NCBI GenBank assembly: GCA_965202585.1
Contig: OZ241829.1
Location: forward strand, 7,564,001-7,628,000
Reading direction: 5' to 3'
DNA from: Thalia democratica
Lineage: Eukaryota
Length of the DNA stretch: 64,000 nt
This document shows positions 1-34,524 of the stretch, in pieces. The stretch's first letter is position 1. Every line of letters begins with the position of its first letter. The position numbers and the translations under genes were made by a program. The notes under the pieces were generated by a model, which worked only from the letters and a program-made list of their open reading frames with translations, did no database searches and had not been told where the DNA came from.

Positions 1-3000
1 TAATAAAGTATGTCACTTATACACAAACATTTTACACTGTAGTTTTAATTGCTTAGTGAATAAAAACATGATAATAAAACATTTACTTTAACAATGTGTC
101 TCTAAAAGTGTGCAAAGATTTAAAATTAACTGCTTAATTTTAAAGCTTGTAGCATTCAGAGTTACAACAAACAAAAGTACAGCTTGATTTTTAGCTCTAA
201 AATGGTAATTGAACATTTTACATTGTAATCTCTTTACAAATATTCATAACACATAAGTTTTGACATATAGAAAAGCTAATGAATAATAGTAATAGCTTTT
301 AGTTAATTTTGCACACTTTAGAAACTCTATAGGATAATTTATAATCTAAAATTTTAATTGTAATTAATTCATAATTTTATGACATGCATTTATAAACACC
401 ACTCTTCAATTCGAAAACTGTACTCTTTTAACCAAATTTCAGCTTAATTTGAATAAGATTAGAAACTAAGCAGCAAAAGCTGTTAATGTACTTTACTTGA
501 TATCAATTGAGTTTGAGCACTAATTTACACTAATGATATTCTATATTTACAAAAAAATGACAATATTTAATGAAACAATTATTTTTCAAGTATTTAAAAT
601 TGAGAAAGCACTACTAAAAAAATTAAGTTTTGGCAGCCCTGAAAAATAATCTTATATGACATTTATTATCTTAACATTAACTATTTTGTATAACATATAA
701 AGCACTTACCTCAGTAAGAGCAGTAAACCAAGAACAGACCTGATATTCAAATTGCCACAAGAAGGTTAGTGGCAACAAGGGTTGATATAGATGACTGCTG
801 TAGAAATAGAGATGCCCAATTTGTTTGTGCTTAATAAAAACTTTTCAGTGCAACTATGATTAAATAGAAACACATGATAACTCATGTAGCAGACTGCTGA
901 TTTGAGACACTTATTCACCATAAAGGTGAAGAATTTTCTCTGAAATCATGAAAAAAAAAAAGATAATTAATTATATGGTAAGAGTAGGAGACTGTTGGTT
1001 TGAGATACTTTTTCAACATAAAGAAAAGATTTTCCTCTGAAATCATAAAATATTAGATAAATAATCATATGATCAGAATAGAATACTGTTGATTCAAGAT
1101 ACTTTCAAAACATACAGACATTATTTACATTTCTTTTCTAGCATAAACAGTTTAAGTTTCAACTGTTAAAGACAATGCTAATATTTTTTTCAAACCAAGT
1201 AATTGATTTTATGTGTCTGCTTTTAGTACCTTTTATTACTTACAAAAAGGTAAACTCTAAAATGATTTATGAAAGTAAAGTAAAAAATGACAAGAGCTGC
1301 TACCAGTAACACAACATTTTACTAATGAATGCAATTTCATAAAAATTTCTGCATACAGAATTGAACATGACCATCACAATAAAGTAGAAGTCTGTTGATT
1401 TAAGACAATTTTTCAACATACAGGTAAAGACTTTTCTGTGAAGTTGTCAACAAAAAGAAAGTAAAACACAAGGTTATCACAACAAAGTCTGCTGATTTAA
1501 GACAGTTTTTCAACATACAGGTAAAGACTTTTCTGTGAAGTTGTCAACAAAAAGATAGTAAAACACAAGGTTATCACAACAAAGTAGAAGTCTGCTGATT
1601 TAAGACAGTTTTTCAACATACAGGTAAAGACTTTTCTGTGAAGTTGTCAACAAAAAGAAAGTAAAACACAAGATTATCACAACAAAGTAGAAGTCTGTTG
1701 ATTTAAGACAATTTTTCAACATACAGGTAAAGACTTTTCTTTGAAGTTGTAAACAAAAAGATAATTAAACACAAGATCATCACTATAAAGTAGAAGTCTG
1801 TTGATTTAAATCACTTTGGCAACATGCAGATGATGTAGATTTGTTTTGTGTTCTTTTTTTCAACCATAAACAGTTCAAGTTTCAACTTTTAAAGACAACT
1901 TTGATTTTTTTCATACTAAGTGATTGGTTTTGAATTGTATGTGCTTGTACTTTAAGTACATTTTATTACTTACAAAAACTTTTAAAAGAAAAACTCTAAA
2001 AATGCTTATGTAAAGAAAGTTTAAGTAAAAATTTGATGACCTACCACTCCTATGGAAACTTTCCTAAAATGGATTGCAATTTCTTAAAAAAATTCTGCAA
2101 ACAGAATTTTTGTATAATTACGTAACAAATAAAACTTGTGCAAAAAATTCACTTGGTGACATTCACGAGTTCTCTCTTCTCTCGCTTTGATAATTTTAAG
2201 CTAATTTTAAACTTTTAGCTATACTTTTTTTAAACCTTGGTTTTTTCAAAAATAAATTTTGCCATCATGTCGAGCACCGAATTCTGCTTCAAAAAACACC
2301 AAACACTTTATAAAAAGGATGAAAAATGAGCAAAATAGAACTTAAAAACTTCAAAGCTTTGAATTTTAATTTAAAGTTTTGTCAAACTTGTATCTCTTGT
2401 TCGAAAAGATTTAGAAACAATTAGCAGATACTAGTATTCGAACTATGTTCGTAACAAATATCTCTTCTATGTTTTTAATTTCAGCTTTAAACTTTTGTTT
2501 TACTTAAAGATTTACACTTGTATCTATTCATTAACTGCTTAAACAAAACATTACTTACATGTGTAAATATAAATGATTAAAATAGAGGTGCGATTTTAAT
2601 ACAGTTACAGTAAACTTTTGATTGATTAGTAAATTTTTTTCTAAACTACTTTTTATGGAAACTTGTTGGTTTTTGTACTTATTTATCAAAGTATACTTCA
2701 ATCTAGTAGATACTCTCAGTTGTGATAAGTATGTGGTTAAAAATTTATGCACACATTAAAGCTTAGCTTAATCTCAAAAACTCTGTACTTTTAATTTTGT
2801 CGTTTTTATTTGTACAACAGTTTATTTTTACATGACTTAAGTTTAGCACTATTTCTAAATTAAAATGTAAATGTAATGTTAGTATAATGTAAGTTACAAT
2901 AAAAAAAATTTCATCAAGTTTATAGACAACTGTAGAGTCTTTATTTGATGTGTACACTGACAAACTTATCTATATGATTTGACTGTATTTCTATGTATAG

Positions 3001-3845
3001 TCAAATAAATTGATAATGTAAACTTTTGGTACTTGTAAATACTGTTGTTTACTTAATTGACCTTTTCAAAATATTATTACATTCAAGTTGTTTGAATAAA
3101 TGCTTGTGAGCTGCAGAACAGTTGAACTAATTTAGCTCCAATAGAATCTTAAAATTGTAACACAAGTATTCAAAGTATTGTGTTTTTAAAATACATACTG
3201 TTCCTGATGGAAAAACCAGCACATTTTACCTATCATGTAACTTACATATAAACTGAGCTAAAACTTATTATGATACTTGAACAGGTATCATTCAAAAGTA
3301 AATACATGTGCACTTATTGCTAAATATAGTTTTTAACAAAAGGTGTTTCACTTTATCATAATTATTTCAGTATTATTTGTCAAGTTTCACTAAAGTAAAG
3401 ATTTAACTTTTTTTTATACTAAAACTTTTTTTATGTTTTTCATTTAAAACATAGTGATAAAAATGACCAATAATCTAACACTTTAAGCTAACAGCTAACA
3501 TTTACATTGAAAGCTACTGAAATTTAGTTGATAAAACTTATTGATTAGTGTAGTACTTATTTATAAATTAATGCTTAACTCTAGAATTAAAGAGAACATT
3601 TAGTTGCAATAAGTATGAGAATACACACTTATACAAACACCAATGTTTAGCTTAACTTTACAAACTATAATGGGACGTATCAAAACACTAACAATGCTGT
3701 TAAGCAAAGTAAAAAAACTTTAACCTGTTTTTAAACTTTTGTCTATGTTTTTTTAAAACCTTGTTTTACTTTTAAATAAATTTTACCACCATGTCGAGCA
3801 CCAAATCCTGCTTCAAAAAACACCAAACAGTTTATAAAAAGGATG
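1..3845. repeat. Segmental duplication block, direct paralog of 54517-57245
   Basis: Position 1 (taataaagtatgtcacttatacac) matches 54517 onward colinearly. The paralog lacks 2392-3337 and has fewer VNTR units. The block probably extends left of the window. Confidence 0.95.
885..1825. repeat. 103-bp VNTR (4 units plus a partial, 1381-1825), preceded by 3 older diverged units (about 885-1110)
   Basis: The unit aaagtagaagtctg(t/c)tgatttaagaca recurs at 1381, about 1484 (6-bp deletion), 1581, 1684 and 1787. Confidence 0.9.
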
Positions 3846-5160
3846 AAAAATGAGCAAAATAGAACTTTTAAAACTTATAAATACATTTTTTGCTTGTTTT
3901 AGAGAACATTTAAAAAATACATTTTTCAATAACATATGAGTTAAAAGTTAAAACTAATAGCAGATACTAATATATGAACTATGTTGATAACAAACATCTG
4001 TGCTACATTTTCAACTTCAGTTTTAAACTTCTGTTTAAATTTAAAAGTTTTGTATAAATAATTAAACGTACAAAAATAAAACAAACATTAAATGTAAAAC
4101 TATACAACTTGTTCACAATAATAAATGTATAACACAAGAGTATACGAACGAAAAAAATTATTAAAACAATATAAACCTTTTTACTTTATTTATTCAACAA
4201 ACAAAACTCAATTAAGTTGATTATTTTAGCACAACAATCAAAAACAAATGTTGATTGAAAATATTTTTTTATAGGTTTATTTTTGTTAACTTCCATTAGT
4301 ATAAACATTCAACTGCATAAGCACTTTAGTCAAATATTTTTATAATAAGAACAGCAAGTCTACCTAAGTGATAAAAACAAGCTAAAGTAGCTTTATCTGA
4401 AAACTAGACATAACTGTAAATATGGAAATTTATGCAAATTTTTGAGCAACAAAATTCAATGAAAATGAACAAGTAAGTTTTACTTTTGAAATTTTATTTA
4501 ACTTTTTTTTAAACCTTGTTTTTCTCAAAAATAAACTTTACCATCATGTCGAGCACCAAATTCTGCTTAAAAAAACACCAAACACTTTATAAAAAAGGTA
4601 AAAAATAAGCATAATAGAGCTAAAAAACTTCAAAGCTTTGAATTTAGACTATTTTGTAGCTTTGAGTATCTTTCAAACTTGCATGATATGAGTTAGAAAC
4701 AATTAGCAGGTGTTAGTACTCGAACTATGTTCATAGCCAATACCTCTGCTATGTTTTAAATTTCAGCTTTAAATTTTTGTTATATTTGTAATTGTTAATT
4801 AACTACTTAAAAGATCTTTATATGTAAATTTAAATGTTTCAATTCAAACTTTAATTTAATATTATAACCATAAATTTGAGATTGATAGTTTAGTTGGTGT
4901 AACTTACTATACAAATTTATTGATTCGTTTATTTATTTTTAAAGAGTGCTTCACTCTTATTTTTATGAGTTCATTAGTATCAAACACCTTAATAAAGACG
5001 TTGAGGCTTAGTTTAACTTTACAAACTATGTTTAACACATAACAAAAAACTAATGGATATATTACATTAAAAAAACTGTTAAAGAACAAATTATATCAAT
5101 ATACTCACACAAACTAAAGTAGCTTTTATCTAAAAACCATACCAAGTGTAGTCATTAAAA
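2225..5160. repeat. Degenerate array with roughly 750-bp period and a conserved core (catgtcgagcaccaaattctgctt)
   Basis: The core occurs at about 2265, 3790 and 4545. A downstream block gaactatgtt...ttcagctttaaa occurs at about 2440, 3976 and 4722. Confidence 0.75.
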
Positions 5161-7793: not shown

Positions 7794-8795
7794 ATGCATT
7801 CAGAGCCGAAGAAAAACAGTGAGAAAGTATTTCAATTCAGTATCCGATATGTTCCAGTATCTAGCAGTTCTACGACTAACCAAAATCCTGTAATCCAGCA
7901 AAACAGTGCCAACTTTCCTACACTGAATGAACAAACAAGCAGTATAATACGCTCTTATGAACGAAGTGATCATCGAATATTATTGATGTCCGATATACTA
8001 CTCGAAATGCTGGATATAGTAATAATATGATCCCTTCTGATCAACAAAGGGCTTACGAACAATATCGTATACAAAATTTAACAAATAACATGAACGGCGG
8101 ATTACCCCAACCAGCCAATAGCGGAATGAGGATATCGAGTGGTGTTGAAAATTACCCACATTTTACAGTTTCTTCTGACACTCCAAAAGACATTCTTTAA
8201 GTAGTTCTGCTCAGCTATTTTCTCCAAAATTTAATGGTATGAGACCTTATAAGACCAACCAAGCACCTTCTACGACAAATATCGCTCCTACAAAGTACTT
8301 GACTAATACTATTTAACTGCTTCTAGAAAAAATAGTACTTCAAACGTTTTTGGTCCTACACGCAGTTATGATCCACCTGTATCGAGATTTTTCGGAAGTT
8401 ACCTTCAAAAAGAACCTAACACCAGTAATTACAACTTGCTTATGCTCGATTTCAATCGTGTAAACTTCACTTTAAGCAGGGTCATAAGAAACCAGCAGTC
8501 AGATCACAGGCTATTGGAAGGACTCGAGCAGCAAGTAGACAGTAACCACAAAACGTATGAAAGTCGCTTTGATTTGCTTGATCAGAGTGCAGCTGATAGT
8601 CAAAACTGTTTTGGTAACATTGTCAAGCGCTTTGACTATTTTGATAAACTTCATGATGATGCAAAAGGCGAAAGAACGCAAAGGTGCTCAACCATTGCAA
8701 GTGTGTTACAAGTCGTTTTTCTAATTGCTATAATTGTGTTATTGTCTGTACAGTTGTACTACATTAATCAGCTCTTCTCTAGTTTCTCTGAATAA
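7794..8795 (+). pseudogene. MHS-family copy M1, frameshifted
   Basis: Homologous to M3 from start to stop. Three frameshifts (about 7970, 8190, 8310) and a premature stop at 8028-8030. Confidence 0.85.
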
Positions 8796-13069: not shown

Positions 13070-16000
13070 CACTTCTCTGAGATATTCTATAAATGATTTT
13101 CGGAATTTTCAGTTTTACATTTGTTTTCAGATGCTTTTCTATGCATACAATCCAGCACGTTTTTTATTTTCTTTTTACTTGATGATAATTTTTTGATAAT
13201 TAGTGATCCAGAATACCATGTTCAATAAAGCCTTCTTAGTTCGTTTGTTATATTGTCATAATGTTAGTATATATAAAATATTATATTATTATTTTTCGTA
13301 TCAAATTCTTTAAAAAACTAAAAAAATAGTTTATATATAAATATTATATAAGTTATATTATTGAAAAATAATTTAATAGATGTTGAAAATACTATTTGTT
13401 TATTGATAAAAAAAATTCATCACTACGTTTTTAGAAACATTTATTTTCTTGGTTTATACATAATATCAGTATTAATTGCTCCATAAGAAGTAAACGTAAA
13501 GCTTTTGATTTCTTATTACTTCATAACATTTTAAATAGTTACATAAAGCAAACTAAAAGATAGTTAAATATTGCTTCAATTAAAAAAAAGATATATGTAT
13601 AGAAACATATTTAATTAATTTGCAAAGTATGAATAGTCACTTAGTTTACAAACTTTTATTAAATGTCTCCGCAGGCGGAAGTGCAAAACAACGTGAACTA
13701 TGTACACATACTTAATGTTGGTATATTAATAGTTTTTTGTTATAAAGTTTTTTATCTAGGATATGAATTTACATTGTACTAAATAAATTATTTCAAACGT
13801 TCCTAACAATGTATAACTTTTTTCGAAAATTATTTAAAGCTAATTTATTGTTGATTAAACGACAAAAAAATCAATATATTTGGTCTCCGGATTTGGTGCA
13901 CCAAGAACCTTTTGGTTATCGAGTCGCACACCATGGATGATTGTTAAGCTTATGTCTAATAAAAATATACAGTGCAAAAAACAGGTAATTGAGTTGATTT
14001 ACTAAAATGTATAATGACTGCCATTGTTTATATAACGGTAAAAAGGAAGTGCTTAATAAGTCTGGTCTAAGGACCTGGTGTAAAAAAAACTTTTCGCTTG
14101 TCGAGTGCTACACCACAAAATTAGTTCGATTCTTTGCATAGCCTATCTTTTTAAATAAGATAAGTATATATTCCCTATATATATATATTACTTTTCTCAA
14201 AAGTTATCTCAAAATTATACTATTATATATATAGAGACATAATAGTAATAATCAAATTTATAACACAACACTCTCATATTTTTTATCATATTAGGTTAAA
14301 TAACCTTGATCAAAATAATTTTAATTTTCTTTTTTACAGTGTTATTATGTAGAAGGTATACATGCTAGAAAGTCGACAATGGTATTAATTAATGTATTTT
14401 TAAGTATGCAATAGTTGACATTAAACATTTTTAACTATTTTATTTTCACAGTTAATTTTTTTATATAGTGAACTTTTCTTTGTTGCTGATAAAAAACTTA
14501 TAACCTTAGGTTAAAAACCTACGACAAAAAAAAGATACAGTTCTGTGTTATAATATATGTATAGTAATACTTCGTATGTTTGAATTTTTTATTAAACTTA
14601 CTTAAGCTCCATAGTTTTATAAAAATGACCGAAGATGTATGTCTATCTTAAAACTTATTGTCAAAAGTTCAAACTTATTCTTAAGTGAACAGAAAAAATC
14701 CAAAACGATGTTTCAATACTTTTAGTGTTTCTTTTTTAAAATTTTACAGTCAAAACAAAACAAAGAAGTTTAATAGGCTCGTAACAGTTTAATTTAGTAG
14801 TATTTACTCTTTTGCTCCTTGGATAATAAAAACTTTATTCATGTTTTAGTCATATATTCTGTATTTGTAATTACGTTTCAAATCTTAGAATTTTTTTTTT
14901 TAACAGTAAACGTTATTATAATTTATAGTATAAAATATAGTTTTAAATTTATAGTATAAACTATAATTTTGCTAAAACTCGCTAAAACTAAAATTTTGCT
15001 TTTTAAAGGTTGTCTCTTTCGTGATGGTTTAGTAAGTATTGACGATTTTAATAAGTATTTATTAAAAAATCTGTTAAAGAATGTAGTTTTTTTTTAAATG
15101 TAATCTTTTTTCTGCTACTTGAGTCAAAATTTAACAATAAGAATTTAAAAAAAAAAATGTTAAGATTAAACAAAAACTTTCTGATATTGATCTAGTATTA
15201 GTATTCTGTCATCAAAGTAAAACACTTAATTAATGACTATGTTATATTCAATACACTTAATGATTTTATTTATAATCATAAAATATTTTTAATAATATTA
15301 TTTTCTATTGTTTCTTTCTAACTTAAGCAGTAAAATTATTTTATGCTCTTTAGCGCTACATCAATTACTGGTTTTAAAGCAAACGAAACTGACACACCGA
15401 TAATTGCTAAACCAACAATCTAAATGTTCTTAAAAATGCTCAGTGAACAAGAGATGCTGTCTTAAAGTATGATAGTGTTAATCAAAATATGGCATCACTA
15501 TTTTTGTATGTTAGTTGCAAACAATTAGTTAAAAAGTTTTTTTAATCTTTTTATTAAGAGTGTTATGTCATAAAACAGTATTCTTTCATATTTTAAAATG
15601 TAGATCAGCTTTATAGTAAATATAATCAGTAACTCTTGTAAGTTTGTTTTTTGAATTCAACAATAGCAATGCCAATATGTTTTCAACATTTAGTATAGTT
15701 AAAGCATATCAACTGCAAACAAATTATTAAAAATTATTTTAAAAGGCAAAGTTAAATAGTTATTTATTCTAAACTTTGTTTACATCAATATTTAGTCTTA
15801 ATAATCTGCACTAAAATAGATTTAAATAACTCAACAAACTGTTTTTCTGCTAAAAATCAAACATTTACTTATTTTAAGCTTAAAAATATATGTAATAGTC
15901 AATAAACACTTTAATGTTAAAATATGATAACTAAATCTAGAAAATAAACTTTAAAAAAAAGATACAGCCAGAAAAAATGATAAACTTAAACTTTAAGTTG

Positions 16001-20122: not shown

Positions 20123-21273
20123 CAGGGCTGCCACACGGTTAGGAATGTTAGGAAAATCAGGAAAAGTCAGGAATTTCTTAAAAAAAAGTTTCAAAAGCGA
20201 TGAAATATCAAAAAAAAAAGGGGTTTTTGAAAAAAGTCATGATATTTGACAAAATTTTAAAAATCATCAGACTTTGTCAGTTCAAGTTTACAAAAATCCT
20301 TATTTTCCAGAGCCTTCAAATGGTAAAAAATTAGTTTAAAGTTGTTTTAAGTCAGACTAAAATTGAGAAATTTTCCAATAAACTTACAAACTTACATAAT
20401 TTCCAATGCCTATTTATGGTAAAAATTAGTAAAACTTCCTTTATGAAACTGCAAAACTTTTCTATTAAAACATTAAACAACAATCCTACTTAAACAAGCA
20501 GTTTTTGTATTCTTTTTAGTAGTGATGAAATACATAAATGTTTGTCTTGCAGTATTTTCAAATCAAAGTGTTTTGTGTTAAAGTATATAATTAAACTCTT
20601 TATAAATGAGTACTAAGTTTAGTATTTTATGTAACAAGTTTATCTGTATCGTTTACCTTTTTATAATATTTTCAAAGTTGTTTATATTTGTAAAACAAGT
20701 AAAAGCAGATTATGTTATTAATTTTTAATGAGTTTACTGCATTTTACTTGTTGTTTCATTTATTTTGAATTCTGAAGATATAGAGGGAGACAACAATGAC
20801 CATATATGAAAGTCAACTCTAAAAACCCAAGTGTAATTTAAATAAGTAATATAAATAAAAAATGTCTGCAAAGGGTCCTAAACATAAACGTCCTAGAAAG
20901 TAACCCTGTCTGCAGGAAAAGTATAAGTTAAATAGGTCAGGTTGACAATCTGCCGTAGACAGAGAACCAGACTAAATTGAGGTTTTGGTTGTCGGCCCAT
21001 CAGCATCCATATCTCACAAAATTTTGTATTTAAAACGTTTCATGATAAATAAAAACATTTTATTTAACAAATTGTAATGGATTAAGATGATTAAATTCAG
21101 AAAAAAACTGTTGTTTCAAATAAAGTAATACTGCTGTAAAAAAGTAACATTGAAAATTTTATCTAGTTTCAAGTGTTTGATTATGTATTTTAGAATAGTT
21201 TAATTTAAGAGTTTGATTTAAAAAACTCAAAAAAAGCAAGATTTTTTTCTCAGCTTGATCTGTGGCAACCCTA
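20123..21273. mobile_element. Non-autonomous DNA transposon, CAGGG(C/T)TGCCA TIR family
   Basis: cagggctgccaca ... tgtggcaacccta. Flanks ttgttg / atgttg (5 of 6 match). Subterminal tcaggaa repeats. Confidence 0.75.
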
Positions 21274-22637
21274 ATGTTGGGAAATTTAAACTTTATACTT
21301 TTCTAACTGTTCTTAAAAACAATCTACTTTCTATTAGGGAAACATTGTTATTTTGACTTGTTTATTGGATATGAACTTTATGACACGGTAGTACATTTGT
21401 ATAATTTTTAAAGTCAACGGATTTAGAAAATACTTTGCTTGAAGTCTTTTCATAAGAATAGACATAAGTTTAGTCGAAACAAATATTAAGAAAAAATAGT
21501 GTTTTTAACACAAAAAAAATCTACCTTTTAACATTTTGTAAGTGTGAAACTCTTATATTTTAGTTCTGTGAAAATAATGATACATGGTATTTAACAAGTA
21601 TAACAGTATTGATTGACCAAGGCAGGCCGAAATAAAAAAATACTGGGCAGGTCATTTTTATCTTAGGGTCGGTTTCCATTGAAATTTTATAAACATTAGC
21701 GGGACAGTCATTCTCAACCTACGAACTGAATTCGGTTTCTGGCCTGGTCCACCGTACCTAACCCTACCTATACTAGATTGTTTGTAACCATATTTTGATG
21801 TATGTACCTTTAGTTTTATTAGACTTAACATTAACCTTAAATTTTAACTTAGCTTGCACATATTTTTTAAAATCTTATTATTTATAACTTGCTTTCTAAC
21901 TGTTTAACTAAATTAATAAAGATATTTTCAATATTAAATTGTATCTTAATAACTATTTTTATTTCAGTTTAATAAAAGATAGCAAACTTCTAGTTTGCAC
22001 TACTAAGTAAAATTTTTCTAGAGTAAATGCAAATAATAATTTAACGGCATCAATATTTTATTTAATTAGTAAAATTATTTGAAACAAATTATTATAACTA
22101 TAAATTTAAATAGATTATCTATTATTTGCTTTCAAAACTTTGAACATTGAGTTCTCGCTTTATGAGATGTTTCAATTATTTAAAACAGTATAATGAAAAA
22201 TGTAAGTCTTTTATATGGTTTTAGTATGTTAAACTTAAAGTTTTACAACTAAATTTTAAAAATCATTTAAAAACAGTTTCAATTTGATGTAACCGTTTTT
22301 TATAATTGATAATTATTTAATTAAATACTATAGTATGTAGAATTGGTCGTCACCATTTTAAAGTGTTAATTATTTAGTTAATTTTTTAATCAATTTTTAT
22401 GGATTATTTAACAGAACTTGTTAAGAGATTTTAACTACTGGTTCACATTTTCATTTTTAAATTATGCTGAATTGATTTATTGTGTTTACATTGTTGCAAC
22501 AACTTCTATTTAAATAAAGTTGTATGAAACCAGTCTAAAAATAAAAACTTTAGAAAAAATAACAAAAACAAAATAAATTTATGTACATTATTTATATATT
22601 TTATTGCCAGAACTGTTTTATTAAATGCTTATATGAA

Positions 22638-25600
22638 ATGTTAAGTTTCATCTCAAGCGATAGTCAGGAAGACTCGGACGATGACTTTTTCGATGAAAGT
22701 TTTTTCAAAACAACTCCAACAAAGAGACTTGATAAAGATTTGAGTAAGAATTTTATTAAACCTTATTTTTCAAAAGTAGTAATATAAAGCTAAATACAGT
22801 ACAGAGTAGAAAGTATGTACTATGAAATGGCTTAAAATTAAGACCTTAAAACTTCTTGAAAAATCACGTATAAAAATTTAAGTATGATTGATAAAGTTTA
22901 TATAAGTTGAAAAATAATCTATCAGAAGTGTCTTGTGTACAAACTTTTTACAAGATTGTTACTTTATAGAGTGTTTATTTACTTTATAAAAACTCTAAAA
23001 TTCTTTTAAAAGCCCGAAAACCAGTGTAACTGAACTGAATTTTACTATTCAAAAATAATCTCATACTGTATGAAATTAATATCATAAAATTCTGATACGT
23101 TAAGGCTTAAAGTTTGTTAAACCTTGTATATCATTTTAAGTAAGCTAACCTATTTTTTTATGCATAAAAATAAAGGAAAGTTGAATTTTTAAACCTTTAA
23201 ATGAACTAATTATATATTTTTTTTTTCAATCAAGTGCCTGATATAGTTGAAGATGTGACCGCAGCATTAAATCAATTTAAAACTGAATTTTCTGAAAGAT
23301 ACTGTCAGGAGAAGGCTGGTCCCAATTTTTCCACCAATACTTTTAGTGATGTTATGGATGAAGCAATTAAGGGTCCAAATTTAAAACAATTAGGTAAAAA
23401 GACAAATTTCAAAATTGTATTTGCTTAAAATAGTGTAGAAAATTTAAAAATAGTTAAATTTAAAACAATTTGTGATTGTGATTTCGTAATTTTAAAATAT
23501 TTCAAAAATTTATTGTTGTTGTACACAAATAACTTCTTCATTTATTTGAAATTTTTTTTTTAAATTTTTATAATAGAAATATTACTAACATACAATTTAC
23601 TTAATTAATAAAACCCCTTTCAAGTAGAACTACTGATAGTAAAATTCAAGAAATTTTGCTATAATATATTAAATACAGTTTAACTAATTAAACATACTAA
23701 TATAAATAAAATGTTTCGTTGAAGTGTTTATTTCAATACCTGAATTCTACTGTATGTAAAATATTTTAACTTTTATATTTTTATTTCACAGCAATCTACT
23801 TACACAATGAGAAGAGTATTGGTTCAAACATATTCTGTTCAGAAGTATTGTGCAATGATAAAATTTCAAAAACTTTAAATTCAAGTTTCATATGTTGGGG
23901 ATGGGACATCACAACTACTTTTAATAAAAATAAGTTTGTTGCTTTCAGTTAATTTTTGATTTACTTTTGAAATATTCATTTGTTTTTTCATAGTTCCTAC
24001 ACTTTTGACTGTTTGTTTTTTTTTTTATTTGACACCTAATTATACTTAAGAGATCTTGTTTATTTCACAATTTTACCTTTTAAGATATATTTCAATACTT
24101 TTTTTTACGATTTTGTGTTTTTATATATTTTTTAGCTATCAAAATTTGTATGCCTTTTTAAATAAATTAGTAAGTCGTTTTTATTTAATTTTTTTTTAAA
24201 TATTTTGCTCCATGTTTTATTACGATTTTACGTTGTTAATAATTTTTTCCGTGTTTGTTTAAAAGTTTTAAAACATTAAAGCTTAGAATGTTTTACTATA
24301 AAATTAATAAAAGAAAATTTTTGAAATCAAATGTAATATTTTTCCTATAGCATAACACAATTTAAACACAGGTTATTAGATTTTGCATTCAACTATTGCC
24401 ATGATCTACGTGAGGAACTTGAAGTTATAAATCAAGGGACCAATTCCATGCTTGTTTTGATAACTGGTGTTGGTGACCATTTCAAAGTTGACAAAATTCT
24501 CAAAGGTATAAGTGTTTTTTGATATTTTTAATAAATAGACAGTATTGAAGCTATATTTTTATATTTTTTAAAGTAATGATTTTAAATTATAATTTAATAC
24601 ATTTAATTTGAAAGTATGAAAACGGCATTTTAAATCTATATATATATAAGTATAAATATACTAAAAAAACTGCTTAAATGTCTATTTTTTAATAAGTTAA
24701 TAATTCAAACAGCGTTACTTTACTATGTAGATAAAAATTTACGTATAAAAAAACTATATTACTAAGCACAGAAAATATTGCAAGTAGTATAACTTTTTTG
24801 TAAAAATTATTTTCTTAACTATTTTTTTTCTAATAAATATATTAAAAATGTTGAGTTTCTTATACTAGTCACAAAATAAAAATTTTCTAAGAATTTGTAA
24901 TCAAACAATTAATTACTAAAATGTGCACTGTGTATCAAATAAAAGTTTATTAACATATTCTGTACAGTACATATTCTAAAACATTACTTGGAGTCACTGA
25001 ACAAAAATGTATTTTTTGTAGATGTTGATGATTCTAATACGGTATACGAAAGCTTAGTTAAAGCTAAGATAAAAGCTGTAAAAAGGTCAGTTAGTTAAAA
25101 TTCTCATATAAAGAAATACTTAACTTGATCATAAAAGATGTTTTTAATATATTGTTATTATAGAATAGTTTAAACTTCCGACAAAAATTTTAGTCTTTGA
25201 AAATATATAAAAACTCAAAAATTGTAGAAATAAAATACTTTTATTTAAACTTACTTGTTTTTTACAGTGTTAAGCTTGTTGTTCAGCTTGATTGTATTTC
25301 TAATTTTTACATACAAGTTTAGTTAACGATAGTTTTGCTAATATTATCAAATACAATTTTCAAACCGTTTAAAATTCATTTAAAAAGTATTCAACAGAAA
25401 CATTACCGAAATGTATGCGGAAAACTCAAAATACGTTTTGGAGGTTATGACGTCATCGGATGAAGATTACGACGTCATAAGGAGAAATTTCGAGAACACA
25501 ACGACGGGTGAGAAAGCTCAAAACATCTACCGCGTAACGAGACGCGATGACGCAATTAATGATAAAAGGGATGATGATGTATGTAGAGAGAAAATTGATG

Positions 25601-26247
25601 ATAAAATTGGTAATGAGAAAAGTAATGATGACATATGTACTAAGAAAGAATGTAATGACGTTGCTAAAGAGAAGAGTTACCATCACGCAAGCAAGGAGAA
25701 TAGAAATGATGACGTCAAAGCAGCTGATGACGTATGTGATGGGAAAAGCGATAATCTCCTACTGTTCCATGGGACCAGCTTGGAAAATTCCGTTGGCATC
25801 ATCGAGGAAGGTTTCAGGCCGTCTGAGAGGGGTAAATTCGGCCCTGGTGTCTACCTCACGGCCAGCTCAGTGTGCGCGATAGGCTACGCGATAAAAAAGT
25901 CCCTGGACAAGAAGCTCTTCGTCCCAAACAGCATTGCGTTTGGACAACAAACCCCTAAAATTATGCATTGCGTTTTCGTTAACGAAGTCTTGGAATCGGA
26001 GAAGCTGAAGGTGCTAAAGTGGAGCGACGCCGACAGCACCAAGAACCAGTTTGCAAAGTACCTGGAGATGGGCAGGATGGAGGATCTGGAGGGAGAGACT
26101 CACGATGAGGACAGCAAGGGAAGAAGGATCAGGAGCTCTCCGGCGACGCAAGCGGATGATTACGATCATTACGTTTGCTGGAAGGACTTGGTCGCTCCCA
26201 GATACTTCATTCAGTTCTACCATATTTTAACTGATGTAAAACTTTGA
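22638..26247 (+). CDS. Chimeric protein, about 484 aa: FAF1-like acidic linker + UAS domain fused to a PARP-like ADP-ribosyltransferase domain; exons 22638-22743, 23235-23393, 23792-23933, 24372-24505, 25022-25085, 25398-26247
   Basis: All five introns are GT-AG with compatible phases (1,1,2,1,2); the spliced length is 1455 nt with no internal stop. The translation includes ALNQFKTEFSERY, AIYLHNEKSIGSNIFCSEVLC and FICWGWDIT (FAF1 UAS-like), then LLFHGTS, GFRPSERGKFGPGVYL and YDHYVCW...PRYFIQF (PARP-like). The 5' end is uncertain; there are alternative acceptors at 22610 and 22657. Confidence 0.88.
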
Positions 26248-27970
26248 AATTTTTGTGGATGTATTTCAAGTACTTATTTTGCTAAATATATATATAGAAA
26301 AATTAAAAACACGTCTTAATTACACTCAATTCAGTTACAAGCAATTTTTTCTACATGATCTCTACTCTTATATTATAAATAGAATATACTCTTTTTGTTT
26401 TTGGATCGAATTTTTGATTTTTTTTACAATATTTTGCACACAAGTTTTAAATTGCGTCGCCGAAATGAGCTTAATAAAATACAACCCATGAAAGTTTATT
26501 TCCTTATACTTCTTAAGTTAAAAAGGTTCATGAAACTTTAATCTTTGTTTAACTTGTACATTTTTTAAATTTAGTAAAAATTTTTGATAGGAATTTTTTA
26601 GATAATTTAGTTTCAATAAACGGAGACTAATAAAATACATTGTATGTTGTAAATATAAGTAATGCTAAGTTATAACGAGTTAAATAAAAAGCAACTTATT
26701 TTAAGTGTTAAGGCATTTGTTTTAGTCAAAAAACTAAATTTATCCAATATTCATTCAAAATTCACCTACAACTTTTGCATTTATGAAAGTTAGTATTTTA
26801 AAATGTTTTTTATAAACGTTAATTTGTTTTTAAAAAAACCTATTTTGTTTTTTTTTAGTTTATATACTATAGTTGTTTATTTGTATTAATATTGTACATT
26901 CAATATGTTAATAAGACCTAAACTAAAATTGTAAAGTTTTCCGTAAAATGTTCTTTTTTAATTTTTTTTAAATTATTTTTTTATAGTTTTATTTTCAACT
27001 AAGTTAACTAACTTAAAAAATTAATTAAAATTTTTTTTCTAATTTTAGAATGTTCGTAATTTTAAACAGTCATCGACTTAGATGAATATCGACATGATAT
27101 TATAATTGTTTTGTTTCTAAAAAACAATACTTAAAATAAATATTTTTTGAAGCATAAAACTACAAATTTTAAGTATCTTTTTTTAAATAGAAGAAAAAAA
27201 TAAATTCGTTCACAGTAGGATTAACTACAACAACGTTATTCAAAAGACCTATATAAAACAAATTTTTATTAAAGTTATAAAATAAAACTATTTAACAATC
27301 AAGCTTTGTATTTTAAAATAGCACCATTAAAGTCCAGGTTACAGTTTATTGATTTTTTTTTCTAATAAATGCTATGAAGTAGTATAAATTTTTCACAAGC
27401 TTCAAAACTGTATTTAGTTTTAAACTAATATCGTTTAAGAACTTCCCACAGGATGTAGTTTTAGGAGTATCAGTATAACAATCTACCAGACTTATAAAAA
27501 ACATTTATCTAGTATAATGTTATACTTTCCAACAAAAATATTGTTTGAACTAAATAGTAGGATGAGTAGATATCTTACTTTTAGTAATTAGTTCCTGTTA
27601 ATAACATACTTGTTGATAAGGGAAGAATGGAAAACCCACGGTTTTTTAGAAATTATTTTATTTTAACGTACAAAAATTTAAACGAATATCCTAAAAATAA
27701 CAACCTAGTCGAAGAAACCAAATGACATGTGTTAAATTTTTAACTTAAAAAAAACTTTAATTCTAAAAGACTAAAATTTTAATAAATTTCAAAAGCATAT
27801 TTGCCTAATCAAATAGACAAAACCCCTTACCATCATTCGTATATAGATTTTTACACACGTTTATAAAGTTAATACATGCTATAAATAGTAAAATATAAAC
27901 AAGCTATATAAATATCATCCATTTATATTCTGAAGTTAATAAAATTCAATAAATATACCAAAATATTTAC

Positions 27971-30900
27971 CTAATCAAAGAGTCCGAATCCCATGTCGTC
28001 ATCTGATTCTTCTTCGGACTCCTCTTTGATTTCCTCCTTCGCAGCTTCTTCATTATTTTCACCACTAGGTGCCACTACACTACCAGAGGAAGCCGATGAT
28101 CCGACACCGACGTTTCCGACAATAGTTTTCACGTCTATTCCGTTGACAGCCTGTTATATGTTTATTTATTTCTTTTGTAATTGTCTGCATAAAATAACTT
28201 ATATACAAACGTAGTAGAACTTTAGATAAACTGATTAAAAAATCTTGTTTTACCTATATTTATAAAACTAAAATCAATATTTCTGGTGTTAAATGGTTGT
28301 CACTTAAAATATGTTGTTAAATAATTAAGAAGAAATACCACACCAAGTTTATCATATTAAACTAAATACTAAATAGTTATGAAAAGTTAATTCAAAAGTG
28401 TTATAGCACTGCAACTGAGCTAGACAGGGTTGCTGAATGTTTTTGGAAAATTTTCTCCAGGTTTTCAAAATTTCTTCAAAGTTTTTAAAAGTACACATTT
28501 TTGGGTCTTTTTTTAGTTTAAAGTTAAGATTAGGTAAAAACTGTGTTAAATAATATAAAAACATTGAAAATAGGCTTTAAAGCTATTTTAAATAAGTATT
28601 AATAAAATAAATTTTGATAATGAAAGAAAAAATAAAAATAGTAGACTTTTTGTGTCAAATCAAAATTTTTATACTTCACGTATAAAATTAATTCAACATT
28701 TAAGATTTTTCCTAGTTTTTTTATGATTTTTGTCCGAAATTCCAGGTGTTTTTTTAAAGTTTTTCAAATTCCAGGTTTTCCAGGTTTTATAGACTAAATT
28801 GTCAAATTCCAGGTTTTTTTCCAGGTTTCCAAGTGTTTTTAACATCCCAAGCTAGTGGTTATTTAAAATAATCAATCACCTGTGCAAAAAGACCTGGCCA
28901 GTAAGGTTCAACATCAACATTGGCAGCAGCTAAAATAGCTTTGATCTTCTCAGCCTATAAAAACAATTTTTCTTAATATTTTTTTAACAAACAATAATAT
29001 TAAAAGTTAAATTACTTTGAACTTGTTTCCGCTATCAGCTTAATACAGTTGTAGTAAATAATATTATAAAATTTAGTAACTAATAAAACTAAAGTGTTTT
29101 CCTTGTATAGTTGTGCATTTAACTTTGTTTTTCTATAGAAAAATAAACAGATTAAAATAACATTTTTGATTTAAGTTTTACCATACTATTTATAAACCAT
29201 TTACAAAAAAAATATCTTACATAATTGGTTAAGCTAGACTAAACTTTAGTCTATTAGCACAATAATTAATCCTGGAAATGTAAAAAAGATTTTTTGTGAT
29301 CCTTAAATGATGATATTAGAGTTTCCAACTTAGAGTGATAATCAAGCTTATCAATTTTATTTGTATATTAAAACTAATTGTTACTAAAACAATTTATTGA
29401 TTAAATGTTGAACAATGGTTCAAAAAAATTTATACAAGTGCTTCCTGATGCCTACTAAGTCGTTTATTTAATCTCTATTCAAAACAACAAATGTAAAAGC
29501 TTCACATCTTTATTTTTAAGTTTTTTTTTGATAGTGTTTTTTTTTGTTTATAACTGATCAGATTATTTTGACTGTAATTATTTTTTTTAACAAAAATTAT
29601 ATACCGACATGTTACCTTTTTCTTTAAACTTTAAGTATTTTATAAATCTATAAAAAAATTCATAGGATATAGCTTTAAAAACATTTCTAAATTAAAAATT
29701 TTAAACATATTTTTTAATTTAACAAAAGTTTTATTATAGTAAATAACTTGTCAATAAAAATAATCTTTTGATTTAAAATAACAAGTTTTTTGTGTACTAT
29801 AAAAAAAAGAAAATAATTTAAAGAAAGTATGATAAAAATGAAAAGTTTGAATACCTAAATAAAATTTAAGAGCTAAAATTCGCCTGTTATTTTGTTTAAT
29901 TTAACCTTATTAACCTAATACTTTTTGGTCATATCATACACAAAAAGTAATGAATTTATTTTTATGTTGATTCTGTAAATAGAAACAAGTTTACTAAATT
30001 TTATATTTATATGTTTAAAATATTTTTTTAAGGTGTCTACTCAAGTGACAAAGAAAAAGTCTGAGCGACCTAAAAATAGCTAGAGTTACACCAAACTCTA
30101 AATAATTGACATTAGATTATGAGAAAATGAATCAAATAGTTAAAATAAATAAAAAATATATAATCAAGCCTAAACATCTAATCACATAAAAATAATAGCA
30201 AAACAACTTCATAGCTAAACAAATTCTAGGAAAAGTTATATAAAAGTCTAGCCTGATATTTAGACAAATAATCAAACTAGGCTGAGTTAAAAAAAAGTTT
30301 CAAACAAACCGTTTTTGAAAAAGTTTAAACTAACTTGAACTATTAAAATGTTTAACTTATTTTTTCTTGTTTTATGTTTTATGGAAACTGTAACAACTTT
30401 GAAAAATCTAGAAAACTTAACATTAACACTATTTATACAAAGTTGCCACAGTTCGAGTCAAAAAAACTGTCTTGATACTGAGTTATTCCAAGATTTTTTA
30501 AAAATTTAATAAATTTAATTTTTTTAAAATAAATTCTTTATCAAGCTCTTCAACAAAATTGGTATTAAAGTATTAAAAATTTTAAACTAAATCAATTAAA
30601 TATCATTCAAAATCTTGTAAAAAGTAGGCTGAGATTAATGAAATCTTGAAACTATACTGAGTTTTATATAAAATTATTCTGAGGTAGTCAGAGTCAAAAA
30701 AAGATATTGATTTATTTTGAGTTAAATTGAGTCATTTAAATAATTAAATATTTCAAATTATTCTTAGTTGTCCTGAGTGTATGGCAGCCCTGTGTACACT
30801 TTTTAGATTTTTCAATACCAATATCCTACCAAATAATCAAATAGTATACTCTAAAATAACTTTGATGTTAAAGTAAGAGATAATAAACCAACAATTTGTA

Positions 30901-31313
30901 AAACATTTATTTAAAATAGATTTGTCTTAAAAAATATAAGTAGAACAATAAATTTGAATTTGTAAATAAATTTATTTAATAAAAATTACTGCAAATGACA
31001 ATTTTAAATACAGTTGGTAACTAATTTTTTATAATAGTTTGTACACAAAATTTTTCCTCGAATCAGTATTAATAGAATTTATTGTCCATTTAAAACTTTT
31101 TTTATTATTTCTATTTACATAACTATATTTCTATACAACTAACAAACTATTGTAAAATTGTCATTAAAAAAATAAATCTTGTCTTGAGTATACTGTAACT
31201 GATTTCAAAATGTGTAGAAATAATAAAAACCCACTCACCGTAGTTTCTACATTGTCATCTGCCATAATAAGTGCTGCATAGACACAAGCTTTTTCTGATA
31301 TGTTTTGATTCAT
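27971..31313 (-). CDS. RPLP1: 60S acidic ribosomal protein P1, 109 aa; exons 31313-31239, 28954-28880, 28150-27971
   Basis: Spliced translation MNQNISEKACVYAALIMADDNVETT|AEKIKAILAAANVDVEPYWPGLFAQ|AVNG...EESDDDMGFGLFD*, with two phase-0 GT-AG introns. Confidence 0.95.
28425..28850. mobile_element. Degenerate CAGGGTTG-family element in RPLP1 intron 2
   Basis: Left end cagggttgc and multiple ttccaggt subterminal repeats; the right end is decayed. Confidence 0.55.
30438..30792. mobile_element. Degenerate CAGGG-family MITE in RPLP1 intron 1
   Basis: caaagttgccaca ... tggcagccctg with internal gagtc repeats. Confidence 0.55.
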
Positions 31314-32382
31314 CTTAAGGTTTGAACTAGTCTTAGTAATATGAAGAGTACTGAAGGTAGGAAATGCTATCATCGCTTCACTGAACACATAAAAGGTGGT
31401 TTAGAAATGCACTTTTTTTAAAATCTAGTATTCAAAGCTCAAAATACTATTGTATTTAAGTATCAATACTATGTATTGATGTAGTTTTTAGGTGATAAGT
31501 TGAACAAGCAAGACAAAAAGTTTTAGTTCTGTGCATAGTTTACTTTAAATTAAAACGTTTTTGTATGAATAATTATGTGGTTCATAGTAATGTTTTTTTA
31601 TTGTTAGTGTTTTACTATTCTTGCTAAATATTATTGTAAATTTGTTTAAGAAGATACTTAATTATGTAACATATGTTCGTTTTATATTTGTTAAAATAAT
31701 TCATTTCATATGATAGTTAAAACTTTTTTGTAGTAACTGTTGCTTATTGAACGACAAAAAATAGCTCAAAAGTTCTGGTCTAAGGACTTGGTGTACGACA
31801 AACGTTTCGATTTTCGAGTATTATACACCACAGACTAAGTTTGATGTCTTCATATGTGTATATGTAAATATGTATGTATTCGTATGGAATTGTTTTTTGA
31901 ATGAAAAAAACTGATTTCTAGATGCGAAAGCAGAGATTAAAATTAAAATAGCAATTTCTTTGATTTACTTACTATATTTTTTACGCATAAGCGTATCGAT
32001 AGAACAAAAAAAAAATTAAAAGCATCGTTTTTAAATAATAGCAAAAATAAGTAGTTGCCATGCTGTGTAATCTTGTTGCTGTTGAAAAAATTACTTTTAA
32101 TTTTATTTTTGTTCTGATGACACGCCTAAAGCTAAGAAACTATAGTGAATTATTAATTGTTTTTTGTTATTAATATATGTACTTATACATATTGTATAAA
32201 AATATTGTGTTATATAACAGCTCCTAACCAATTTTTTAATTAGTTTTAGAAGTGTTGCTTATAATATTGATTGTTGATGAAGTTAATTTTTCAGTTCCGT
32301 TATTGCTCTGCCGACTGAACATTGAATACATAATGGACGTTTATCTTAAACTAAAATGTCATACTTGAGCAACTAATTATTG

Positions 32383-32762
32383 TGATTGTAAATAGCAACA
32401 ACTAAATGAAGAGCAATACCGATTTGTCTAAATAATTATGTTTGGCACCGATAGGCTTTTATTTTTACATAAAATATTAAAAATAACATCTTACTAGTTA
32501 GCTTTATCTTAATTAGTGTATTGTGCATTTATTTCTGTGTTCACTGAGATTTAATTTTTTAGTTACTAAAATTATCTACTAATAGCAATAACACTTAAAA
32601 AATTGTTCTACAATTTTATTATTTAAAGCTACTTTTAAATTCTATACTCATATACTTATTGCGTTTTTTCGGACTTACTATATAAAAACTATTTATCTTA
32701 GATTTACGTACAATTTAATAAAACAGCATTGCTCTACATTTAGTTATTGCTATTTACAATCA
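32383..32762. mobile_element. MITE-like element with 35-bp terminal inverted repeats
   Basis: 32383-32417 and 32728-32762 are reverse complements with 2 mismatches. Confidence 0.7.
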
Positions 32763-33615
32763 ATTATTTTCAATCGTTATATAAAATTTTTAAGGATTCG
32801 GCTTCCGTATTTTGTTTGATCTTATAAGTGTTAGCTCTCAATACTTTAGGTTCAACCTTATACATTTGTTAGACCTTAAAATGTCTTTTTATAATTGTAA
32901 TACTACTAATAAAATAGTTTTCTTAATTTAAATCTATCAACCTAGGTTGCAATTCGTCTACTATAGCAATCTTATAATTGTTAGCAAACATTACAGCGGA
33001 AAGGTTAATTATAAACAAAACGTTTCAATTTTTTTTTTTTTTAGTTGATGTAACATTAGCATTATAACAACTTTATTGTCGAGATTTTAATACAAACAAC
33101 TTATCTAATAAAAAAAAAACTCTAAAAATAGCACTTTCCACTAGAAATATTTGTATGACCATTTATCTTTAATGTAAAGGGTATTATGAGTTTAAGCGTT
33201 AACATAAGGAAATATTGATAAAATTAATTTTCATTTTGATCTAATAAAATTTAAGAGAATTTTTAACTATTTTAAATAATTAGGAATTTTTACTTTTATT
33301 AGCATGTCTATGTTACAGCTCCTAAAAGGTGGTTTACTTTCCGACATTTTAATTTTTTATGTTAATTATTTTCTTGTTTTATAGTTAGTATATAACGTGC
33401 TGATACTAGTTATTTGTTAAATTAATAATAAAAATAAAAAAACAATAACTAATTTTTTAAATATTTATTAAACACGAATAACTGAATTAACTGCTAAGGC
33501 GGTAAAAAATTAACAATGAATGACAAGCGTATAAAAAAAAAAAGAAATATAACTTATAAAAGTGACACTGAAAAAGAGTTGGATCACAATAAAGTCTGAA
33601 ATTAATTTATAAAAG

Positions 33616-34524
33616 TTATTCAGAGAAACTTAAGAAGAGCTGATTCATATAGTACAACTGTACAAAGAATAAAACAATTATTGCAATTAGAAAAACGACT
33701 TGTAACACACTTGCAATGGTTGCGCACCTTTGCGTTCTTTCGCCTTTTGCATCATCATGAAGTTTATCAAGATAGTCAAAGCGCTTGTCAATGTTATCAA
33801 AACTGTTTCGATTATCAGCTGCACTTAGATCAAGCGAATCAAAGCGACTTTCATACGTTTTGTGGTTACGGTCTACTTGCTGCTCGACTCCTTCCAATAG
33901 CGTGTGATCTGACAGCTGGTTTCTTATGACCCTGCTTAATGTGGAGTTCACACGATTGAAATCGAACATTAGCAAGTTGTGATTACTGGTGTTGGGTTCA
34001 TTGAGAATTAATGGTTTATCTCTTCCCAAGTCACTACCATTAAATCTTCTAACATATGGGTCATAAGTGTTTGAGAAACCAAAATTGTTTGAAGCACTAT
34101 TGTTTTTAGAAGCTGTTAAATCAGTACTAGCCAAGTACTTCGTAGCAGCTACACTTGTCGTAGAAGGTACTTGGTTGGTGTTATAAGGTCTTGTACCACC
34201 AAATCTTGGAGAATATGGCGGAGCAGAACTGTTTAAAGATTTTGGAATGTCAGAAGAAACTCTAGAATGTGGATAATTTTCAACACCACTCGATATTCTC
34301 ATTCCTCTACATGCCTGTTCGCTTTGTATACGATATTGTTCGTAAGCCCTTTGTTCATCAGAAGGTGTTATACTGTAGGTTGATCCGGGAAACTTCGTCA
34401 GTGTCGAATAGTTGGCACTATGGACTCCAGGATTTTGATTAGCCATAGAACTGCTAGATACTGGAACATACTGGTAAATGGATTGAAATACTTTCTCACT
34501 GTTTTTCTTCGGCTTTGAATGCAT
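33616..34524 (-). CDS. MHS-family copy M3, 302 aa, intact; predicted tail-anchored coiled-coil membrane protein
   Basis: ATG at 34524 in the same cacctgtcATGCATTCA context as M1 and M2. C-terminal TM-like segment VLQVVFLIAIIVLFFVQLYYM. Confidence 0.88.
   Translation of the reverse strand: MHSKPKKNSEKVFQSIYQYVPVSSSSMANQNPGVHSANYSTLTKFPGSTYSITPSDEQRAYEQYRIQSEQACRGMRISSGVENYPHSRVSSDIPKSLNSSAPPYSPRFGGTRPYNTNQVPSTTSVAATKYLASTDLTASKNNSASNNFGFSNTYDPYVRRFNGSDLGRDKPLILNEPNTSNHNLLMFDFNRVNSTLSRVIRNQLSDHTLLEGVEQQVDRNHKTYESRFDSLDLSAADNRNSFDNIDKRFDYLDKLHDDAKGERTQRCATIASVLQVVFLIAIIVLFFVQLYYMNQLFLSFSE

Follow-up and report, generated by a model that had tools for sequence, protein, structure and literature searches.

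A FAF1-type UAS gene copy lies 312 nt upstream of a PARP-like exon in Thalia democratica: two closely packed genes or a candidate fusion

We analyzed a 64,000-nucleotide (nt) stretch of the Thalia democratica genome (GenBank assembly GCA_965202585.1, contig OZ241829.1, positions 7,564,001 to 7,628,000 of the forward strand), hereafter called the window and numbered from its first letter. Its plus strand carries six exons, E1 to E6, of which the first five form a FAF1-type UAS sequence and the last a PARP-like sequence. The original prediction had read these exons as a candidate new chimeric gene. The exons were found at the positions claimed, with GT/AG borders throughout, and the spliced frame of 1476 nt comprises 491 codons and a stop without any internal stop. 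They are small, eukaryote-style exons in a window with a G+C content of 22–30% throughout, and the gap between the end of E5 and the PARP-like exon is 312 nt (25086–25397). The layout of the locus is as follows.

22608–22610, plus strand: CAG resembling a splice acceptor, read from the sequence, 27 nt before the E1 start codon, 9/14 pyrimidines
22638–22743, plus strand: E1, with ATG at 22638, an acidic stretch (MLSFISSDSQEDSDDDFFDE...), and the donor A/GTAAGA in phase 1
23235–23393, plus strand: E2, start of the UAS domain by a weak Pfam match
23792–23933, plus strand: E3, FAF1-type UAS domain core with a thioredoxin-like fold type, by Pfam and PDB matches
24351–24505, plus strand: E4, presumed continuation of the UAS domain, from its frame and GT/AG borders
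25022–25085, plus strand: E5, presumed to encode the final UAS helix, with the consensus donor AAG/GTCAGT in phase 2
25398–26247, plus strand: E6, PARP-like exon, with the acceptor caacag/A and a TGA stop at 26245–26247
26302–26478, plus strand: ATTAAA (26302) and AATAAA (26473) 3′ of the PARP stop, from sequence reading; homology to the related Tara contig L001 ends at 26508

E3 matched the FAF1 UAS family in Pfam (PF21021; E 2.6e-18, 66.6 bits against a cut-off of 27, profile positions 41–86) and the structure of the human FAF1 UAS domain (2ec4; E 2.9e-10). E2 matched PF21021 weakly (E 0.043, profile positions 1–32) and had no match in the PDB. E1, E4, and E5 had no family matches of their own in Pfam or in further sequence searches, and E4 as a search query returned no matches. 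Of the full UAS domain that had been claimed, E3 is thus clear and E2 weak; E4 and E5, placed by order and length only, would complete the domain, with 72 residues left for about 60 profile positions. E1 would correspond to the FAF1 linker, and the CAG at 22608–22610 could be a 5′ splice acceptor of the UAS gene, either for trans-splicing or within the untranslated region (UTR).

The statement that the coiled coil and UBX domain of FAF1 do not follow E5 was borne out, as no UBX-like segment was found on the plus strand at 26248–33600. In the search for UBA and UBL exons, ten open plus-strand segments at 15.7–20.5 kb had no Pfam matches, and no candidate was found among shorter segments, where very small exons may have slipped through. 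Altogether, no UBA, UBL, coiled-coil, or UBX exons were detected within 9 kb upstream or 7 kb downstream. E1–E5 read as a UAS-only, partial duplicate of a FAF1-type gene that has kept its introns. Its product would consist of about 209 amino acids, or of 213 with the read-through tail R-S-V-S.

The lack of UBA, UBL, coiled-coil, and UBX exons in these flanks and of family matches for E1, E4, and E5 would suit a decaying, untranslated partial FAF1 duplicate upstream of a working PARP-like gene, but we consider such a relic unlikely. Neither a stop nor a frameshift interrupts the 209 codons of the five exons; in DNA with a G+C content of 25%, open frames that arise at random are short. Every splice site is intact. 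Moreover, E3 matches the human FAF1 UAS domain at E 2.9e-10, and the changes in E5 relative to L001 are mostly synonymous.

The function of the UAS part can be inferred from FAF1, FAF2, and UBXN7. FAF1 and FAF2 have UAS domains that bind long-chain unsaturated fatty acids and polymerize on binding, and a RING domain is the binding partner of the UBXN7 UAS domain (PMC10080908). The p97-stimulating activity resides in a helix-UBX fragment and not in the UAS domain (PMC12965308); a UAS-only protein would therefore not be expected to act as a p97 adaptor.

The PARP-like exon contains an open reading frame (ORF) with its own start codon and the following features.

25411–26247, plus strand: PARP-like ORF from its own ATG (MYAENSKY...), 278 amino acids plus stop; the start Met is common to the relatives P0001, P0005, P0013, and P0021
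25552–25743, plus strand: acidic insertion of 64 amino acids that separates strand 2 from the His strand and has degenerate N-E-K...D-D-V motifs, modeled with a predicted local distance difference test (pLDDT) score of ~50
25768–25770, plus strand: His124 of the NAD+ site (LLLFHGT), invariant in 54/54 sequences and aligned to the His of PARP16 and PARP2
25852–25854, plus strand: Tyr152 of the NAD+ site (GPGVYLT), invariant in 54/54 sequences
26167–26169, plus strand: His257 at the (D/N)-E-Y-V position of the family, where the catalytic Glu is presumed to lie, from the family alignment

E6 matched the PARP family in Pfam (PF00644; 45.2 bits against a curated cut-off of 26.7, E 1e-11, profile positions 48–197 of 199), and the two domain identities originally proposed, FAF1-type UAS and PARP-like, were both upheld. 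An AlphaFold2 model of E6, computed with an alignment of 53 relatives, had a pLDDT of 80.8 and a predicted template modeling score of 0.78. In Foldseek searches of the PDB and the Swiss-Prot models, residues 11–275 of this model matched the ADP-ribosyltransferase (ART) domains of PARP1/2/3 with E ~1e-10 and a probability of 1.00; the sequence identity of E6 to solved PARPs is 12–16%. According to the model, E6 is a complete PARP/ART catalytic fold, and since this fold begins about 11 residues into the exon, E6 appears to be a self-contained domain. The 64-residue insertion is absent in most relatives and 27 residues longer in P0001, and it is special to this subfamily.

At position 257, 30 of the 54 sequences have Glu, 15 including the window copy have His, and three have Tyr. 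This position would be equivalent to Glu988 of PARP1 on the basis of its motif rather than of superposition on the model. By this motif assignment, the His-Tyr-Glu triad is incomplete in the window copy, in which His and Tyr are kept and the Glu position is occupied by His. The triad Glu is needed for chain elongation, and PARP16, PARP10, and similar proteins are mono-ADP-ribosyltransferases with a changed third catalytic residue. Because His and Tyr are invariant and His stands where most relatives have Glu, the sequence suggests a mono-ADP-ribosyltransferase at most, or a non-catalytic binder of NAD+ or ADP-ribose.

An exhaustive search for relatives of E6 yielded 205 representatives (E <= 0.001), all from marine, largely Tara Oceans, metagenome assemblies. 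Most of them are single ORFs of 170–310 amino acids, and many begin with M-Y-(A/S)-(E/D)-N-S-K-Y at the position of the window ATG at 25411. A Pfam scan of the 20 longest relatives found tandem ART domains and one ubiquitin-plus-ART ORF, and no UAS domain. One metagenome protein (P0079, 735 amino acids) combines four ubiquitin repeats with two partial PARP domains in a single ORF, an instance of ubiquitin-family parts joining the ART family. Neither the protein of the window gene itself, fused or not, nor any UAS-bearing relative was obtained with PARP-exon queries in word-indexed and exhaustive representative searches. Scans of JGI metagenome contigs with the exact leader pattern and with the family alignment gave no matches. 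Matches in the ESM Atlas were generic PARP clusters of mixed taxa only, and Rfam found nothing in the whole window. Viral contigs contained no relative of the PARP-like exon, and so there was no sign of a viral origin. The original prediction had called the combination of UAS and PARP domains undescribed, and it turned up neither among the 205 relatives, of which the 20 longest were scanned with Pfam, nor in the papers searched; the literature searched contained no link between a UAS and a PARP domain in one protein.

The PARP-like family, which is divergent, intronless, lineage-specific, and rich in G+C within a genome rich in A+T, is of independent interest. The G+C content at third codon positions (GC3) is 0.54 in the PARP exon versus 0.28 in the UAS exons. 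Within the ART core (25759–26118), GC3 reaches 0.68–0.83 in a genome of about 25% G+C; it is also high in the loci L001, L002, and L003, and is 0.27–0.35 in L006–L008. One relative, L014 (positions 28–80), has TAA in place of GAA just 5′ of the ATG and lacks the first ~100 ART residues, and is probably a decayed copy. In run X1, the segment 25853–26292 is represented by two contig forms of similar depth, one identical to the window and the other 5–9% different, which are either very divergent haplotypes or the window gene and a second copy.

The stretch between E5 and the PARP ORF is bordered by the key junction, 25085/25398, and contains the following features.

25084–25098, plus strand: read-through ending ...K-R-S-V-S-stop if the E5 donor is unused, identical in L001
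25229–25234, plus strand: AATAAA, the sole one between E5 and the PARP exon; L001 has AACAAA, and the motif is at chance frequency in AT-rich DNA
25250–25267, plus strand: competing, stronger acceptor cttacttgttttttacag/TG, at a site kept in L001
25274–25315, plus strand: spacer loss point, with ~570 nt missing relative to L001, L012, and L013 in alignments
25395–25397, plus strand: CAG acceptor of the PARP exon, where conservation among relatives starts
25398–25410, plus strand: leader of 13 nt, AAACATTACCGAA, without a stop in the phase of E5 (R-N-I-T-E), a coding linker or 5′ UTR
From 25398, plus strand: 5′ sequence of the PARP exon, AAACATTACCGAAATG

Joining the E5 donor AAG/GTCAGT to the acceptor caacag/A connects phase 2 to phase 2 without a stop. 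The donor agrees with the consensus at 7/8 positions, for which we estimate, without computation, a chance of ~4e-5 per site in DNA of this composition. The match of all five phases had been considered unlikely by chance. The phases do match and no stop occurs, but this is much weaker evidence than it seems, because the first four junctions just follow a real FAF1-like gene; for the E5–E6 step alone, the phase match together with five open leader codons would arise by chance in about 1 in 4 cases, again an estimate and not a computed value. The pyrimidine tract of the PARP acceptor is weak (5/14), compared with 11–17/25 for the four FAF1-type introns. Joining E5 to the acceptor at 25267 instead would add an 18-codon tail followed by a stop, and this tail is not conserved in L001.

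The 13-nt leader is identical in five loci, and the complete arrangement CAG/AAACATTACCGAA-ATG is identical in L003, L004, L012, and L013, whose PARP exons share ~72–75% DNA identity with the window; similarity drops upstream of the CAG. This pattern makes the acceptor at 25395–25397 look like a real exon start, and from these alignments it appears to be the ordinary 5′ acceptor of the PARP-like family itself. Since an acceptor with an ATG 13 nt behind it is the normal 5′ end of a stand-alone family, it provides no evidence of a join to the UAS exons. In more distant relatives, a CAG is located 15–35 nt before the ATG, and the leader of L008 contains in-frame stops. L004 and L013 have a stronger acceptor ~35 nt further upstream, followed by an in-frame TAA. 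The contigs of L012, L013, and L004 end short of the E5 position. At L002 (300–345), TCG occupies the position of the family start ATG, and the frame upstream is uninterrupted as far as a ttttcacag acceptor and contains no in-frame ATG; judging from this sequence, translation of L002 begins 12 codons further on or else depends on a coding exon upstream.

L001 has ~88% identity to the window in exons and spacer alike, and it keeps E5, the donor, the acceptor, and the frame, with E5 and the PARP exon in the same order and on the same strand. E5 differs between the two by five synonymous and three conservative replacement codon changes (2, 2, and 5 changes by codon position). The ratio of nonsynonymous to synonymous substitution rates (dN/dS), a check that the original prediction had proposed, was obtained for the PARP part against L001 and was 0.48 in the core and 1.04 in the N-terminal half. 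The core value and the mostly synonymous changes in E5 make both parts look like live coding sequence. Just 3′ of the PARP gene, L001 continues (2159–4375) as the reverse complement of window positions 13445–15732 with 83% identity, which implies an inversion or other rearrangement of ~15.7–26.5 kb between two genomes or copies. As L001 makes this switch past 26508, the UAS-PARP pair has remained linked across the rearrangement. However, the agreement with L001 is not an independent test, because the two are just ~12% diverged throughout.

The rearrangement also bears on whether an intron of a complete FAF1-type gene, with its coiled-coil and UBX exons further downstream, harbors the PARP-like gene. 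Single-exon genes often sit in introns, and the E5 donor needs a partner. This arrangement is nevertheless highly improbable, given that the plus strand at 26248–33600 has no UBX-like open segment, positions 27974–31400 are taken up by an opposite-strand ribosomal protein P1-like gene, and homology to L001 stops 260 nt past the PARP stop, at the rearrangement point.

The spacer shared among relatives (L001 283–856, L012 109–544, and L013 63–316) has 70–76% identity. The window lacks ~570 nt of it, and the distance between donor and acceptor is therefore 312 nt. In run X3, a loose contig end at 25299 resembles the spacer form of L001, and both forms occur in sequenced animals. In L012, a short tandem repeat (cgtgcaatttt..., ~16-nt units; positions 1–108) is present where the L001-like spacer homology stops. 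The contigs of runs X1–X3 cover introns and exons evenly and have no joint at any exon border, so these runs look like genomic DNA. A 750-nt contig of X1 that seemingly skipped 24873–25300, and with it E5, was considered as a deletion of E5 and rejected, as another X1 contig of similar depth covers E5 exactly. We read the 750-nt contig as a run into a spacer form unlike that of the window, with a repeat-like partial match.

Taking these observations together, we prefer, with moderate confidence, to read the locus as a tightly packed same-strand pair of two live cistrons, a UAS-only FAF1 paralogue and a PARP-like gene of the stand-alone type. The PARP-like unit would obtain its 5′ end at its own acceptor and use its own start codon at 25411. 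If the genome has a spliced leader of the tunicate type, the CAG at 25395–25397 would most likely be a trans-splice acceptor, the pair may be transcribed as an operon-like unit, and PARP transcripts would begin with the spliced leader joined to AAACATTACC... A chimeric UAS-ART isoform could arise by cis-splicing on the shared precursor, and some in-frame UAS-ART transcript could form because E5 keeps a phase-matched consensus donor 312 nt upstream. Other genes of the window with an acceptor 27–69 nt before the ATG are three tail-anchored protein paralogues, a kinase, RPLP1, and the UAS gene. Four of the five independent genes reach at least 9/14 pyrimidines, a level attained by 32% of all ATGs, and the comparison is no more than suggestive. 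In three paralogous single-ORF genes (MHSEPKKNSEK...) at 7794 and 12191 on the plus strand and at 34524 on the minus strand, the distance from a strong acceptor to the ATG is exactly 33 nt, and the leader between them is conserved (cag/cttttgta...cacctgtcATG).

Several points weigh against two separate cistrons. E5 ends exactly in AAG/GTCAGT, a stop follows just four codons on, and no conserved poly(A) signal lies behind it. The phase fits, and the 13-nt leader is open. The read-through stop is located 313 nt before the PARP ATG, a distance into which a 3′ end, a promoter, and a leader exon would hardly fit, and ~570 nt of ancestral spacer are gone from the window. A Ciona-type spliced-leader 16-mer occurs once in the window with two mismatches, which is the chance level. 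In the C. elegans outrons of Conrad et al., a donor upstream of a trans-splice acceptor reportedly converts the outron to a cis-intron; because such a donor makes the trans-splice acceptor a cis-acceptor, a shared precursor should yield the chimera.

A true chimeric gene, in which 25085/25086 is cis-spliced to 25397/25398 and the main product has 491 amino acids, is a possible reading that we hold only tentatively. In this product, a FAF1-type UAS domain at the N terminus would be followed by ~10 linker residues and then by a complete PARP-like ART domain, and the UAS domain would recruit the enzyme to UAS ligands. Such a gene would agree with the in-frame joining of six exons with GT/AG borders, with a consensus donor at E5 in place of any other conserved ending, and with the signs of purifying selection in both halves. 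In L001, the order, strand, donor, acceptor, and frame of E5 and the PARP exon are kept despite the rearranged surroundings, and in the window the spacer deletion draws donor and acceptor nearer. L002, without the family ATG and yet open to its acceptor, indicates that a coding exon further upstream may be required in some members of the family. On the other hand, the junction 25085/25398 is a prediction from genomic sequence, its acceptor is weak with a stronger, conserved one at 25267, and the ATG, acceptor, and leader are ancestral traits of stand-alone relatives. Codon usage differs sharply between the halves, the agreement with L001 is not independent at ~12% divergence, and the phase match alone is a ~1 in 4 event. 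If the chimera exists, the 491-residue UAS-ART protein would have come about when the 5′ acceptor of the neighboring gene, probably a trans-splice site, was taken over by a partial FAF1 duplicate with an orphan donor.

With two packed cistrons as the preferred reading, the new UAS-PARP fused protein is a candidate only, because the PARP-like gene normally stands alone. Should the junction be real, domains would be combined in a way new to the UAS and the PARP family alike, tying a lipid-sensing or RING-binding module to ADP-ribosylation. The locus would also exemplify, in a probably trans-splicing animal, how a gene can arise in nature when the trans-splice acceptor of a downstream gene is captured and turned into a cis acceptor. 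A link to immunity, as originally suggested, would be purely speculative. Should the junction not be real, the locus would show that in-frame joins of neighboring genes are not to be read as fusions without RNA, since an acceptor just before the ATG is the rule in such genomes.

Two further features were observed around the locus. Minus-strand exons of the 60S acidic ribosomal protein P1-like gene are located at 27974–28153 and 31167–31400, with a C-terminus ending in ...EESDDDMGFGLFD, and this gene is arranged tail to tail with the PARP-like gene. Positions 21000–21393 are a very high-copy repeat, with a summed contig word depth of ~40,000–67,000 versus ~100–400 in neighboring DNA in three runs.

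Compared with known systems, E3 and, weakly, E2 share the thioredoxin-like UAS domain of the p97/VCP adaptors FAF1, FAF2 (UBXD8), and UBXN7. Those proteins also carry UBA, UBL (in FAF1), helical, and UBX parts, whereas the locus is without the parts that bind p97 and ubiquitin. E6 shares the ART fold and the NAD+-pocket residues His and Tyr with mono-ART members of the PARP/ARTD family such as PARP16 and PARP10, and differs from the family in having the 64-residue acidic insertion and no regulatory helical domain or other accessory domain. In the Drosophila jingwei type, a chimeric gene is formed when an incomplete duplicate takes in an exon lying downstream of it. The locus resembles this type in that a partial duplicate without its 3′ exons has an intact donor upstream of a foreign, phase-matched acceptor exon, but here the PARP exon that would have been captured keeps its own start codon, and the joined transcript is a predicted one. 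Spliced-leader-resolved operons occur in tunicates and nematodes and have same-strand genes a few hundred bases apart, with the downstream acceptor a few bases before the ATG, and the locus is alike in these respects. A normal operon gene has no unpaired consensus donor, whereas the upstream UAS gene here ends in one.

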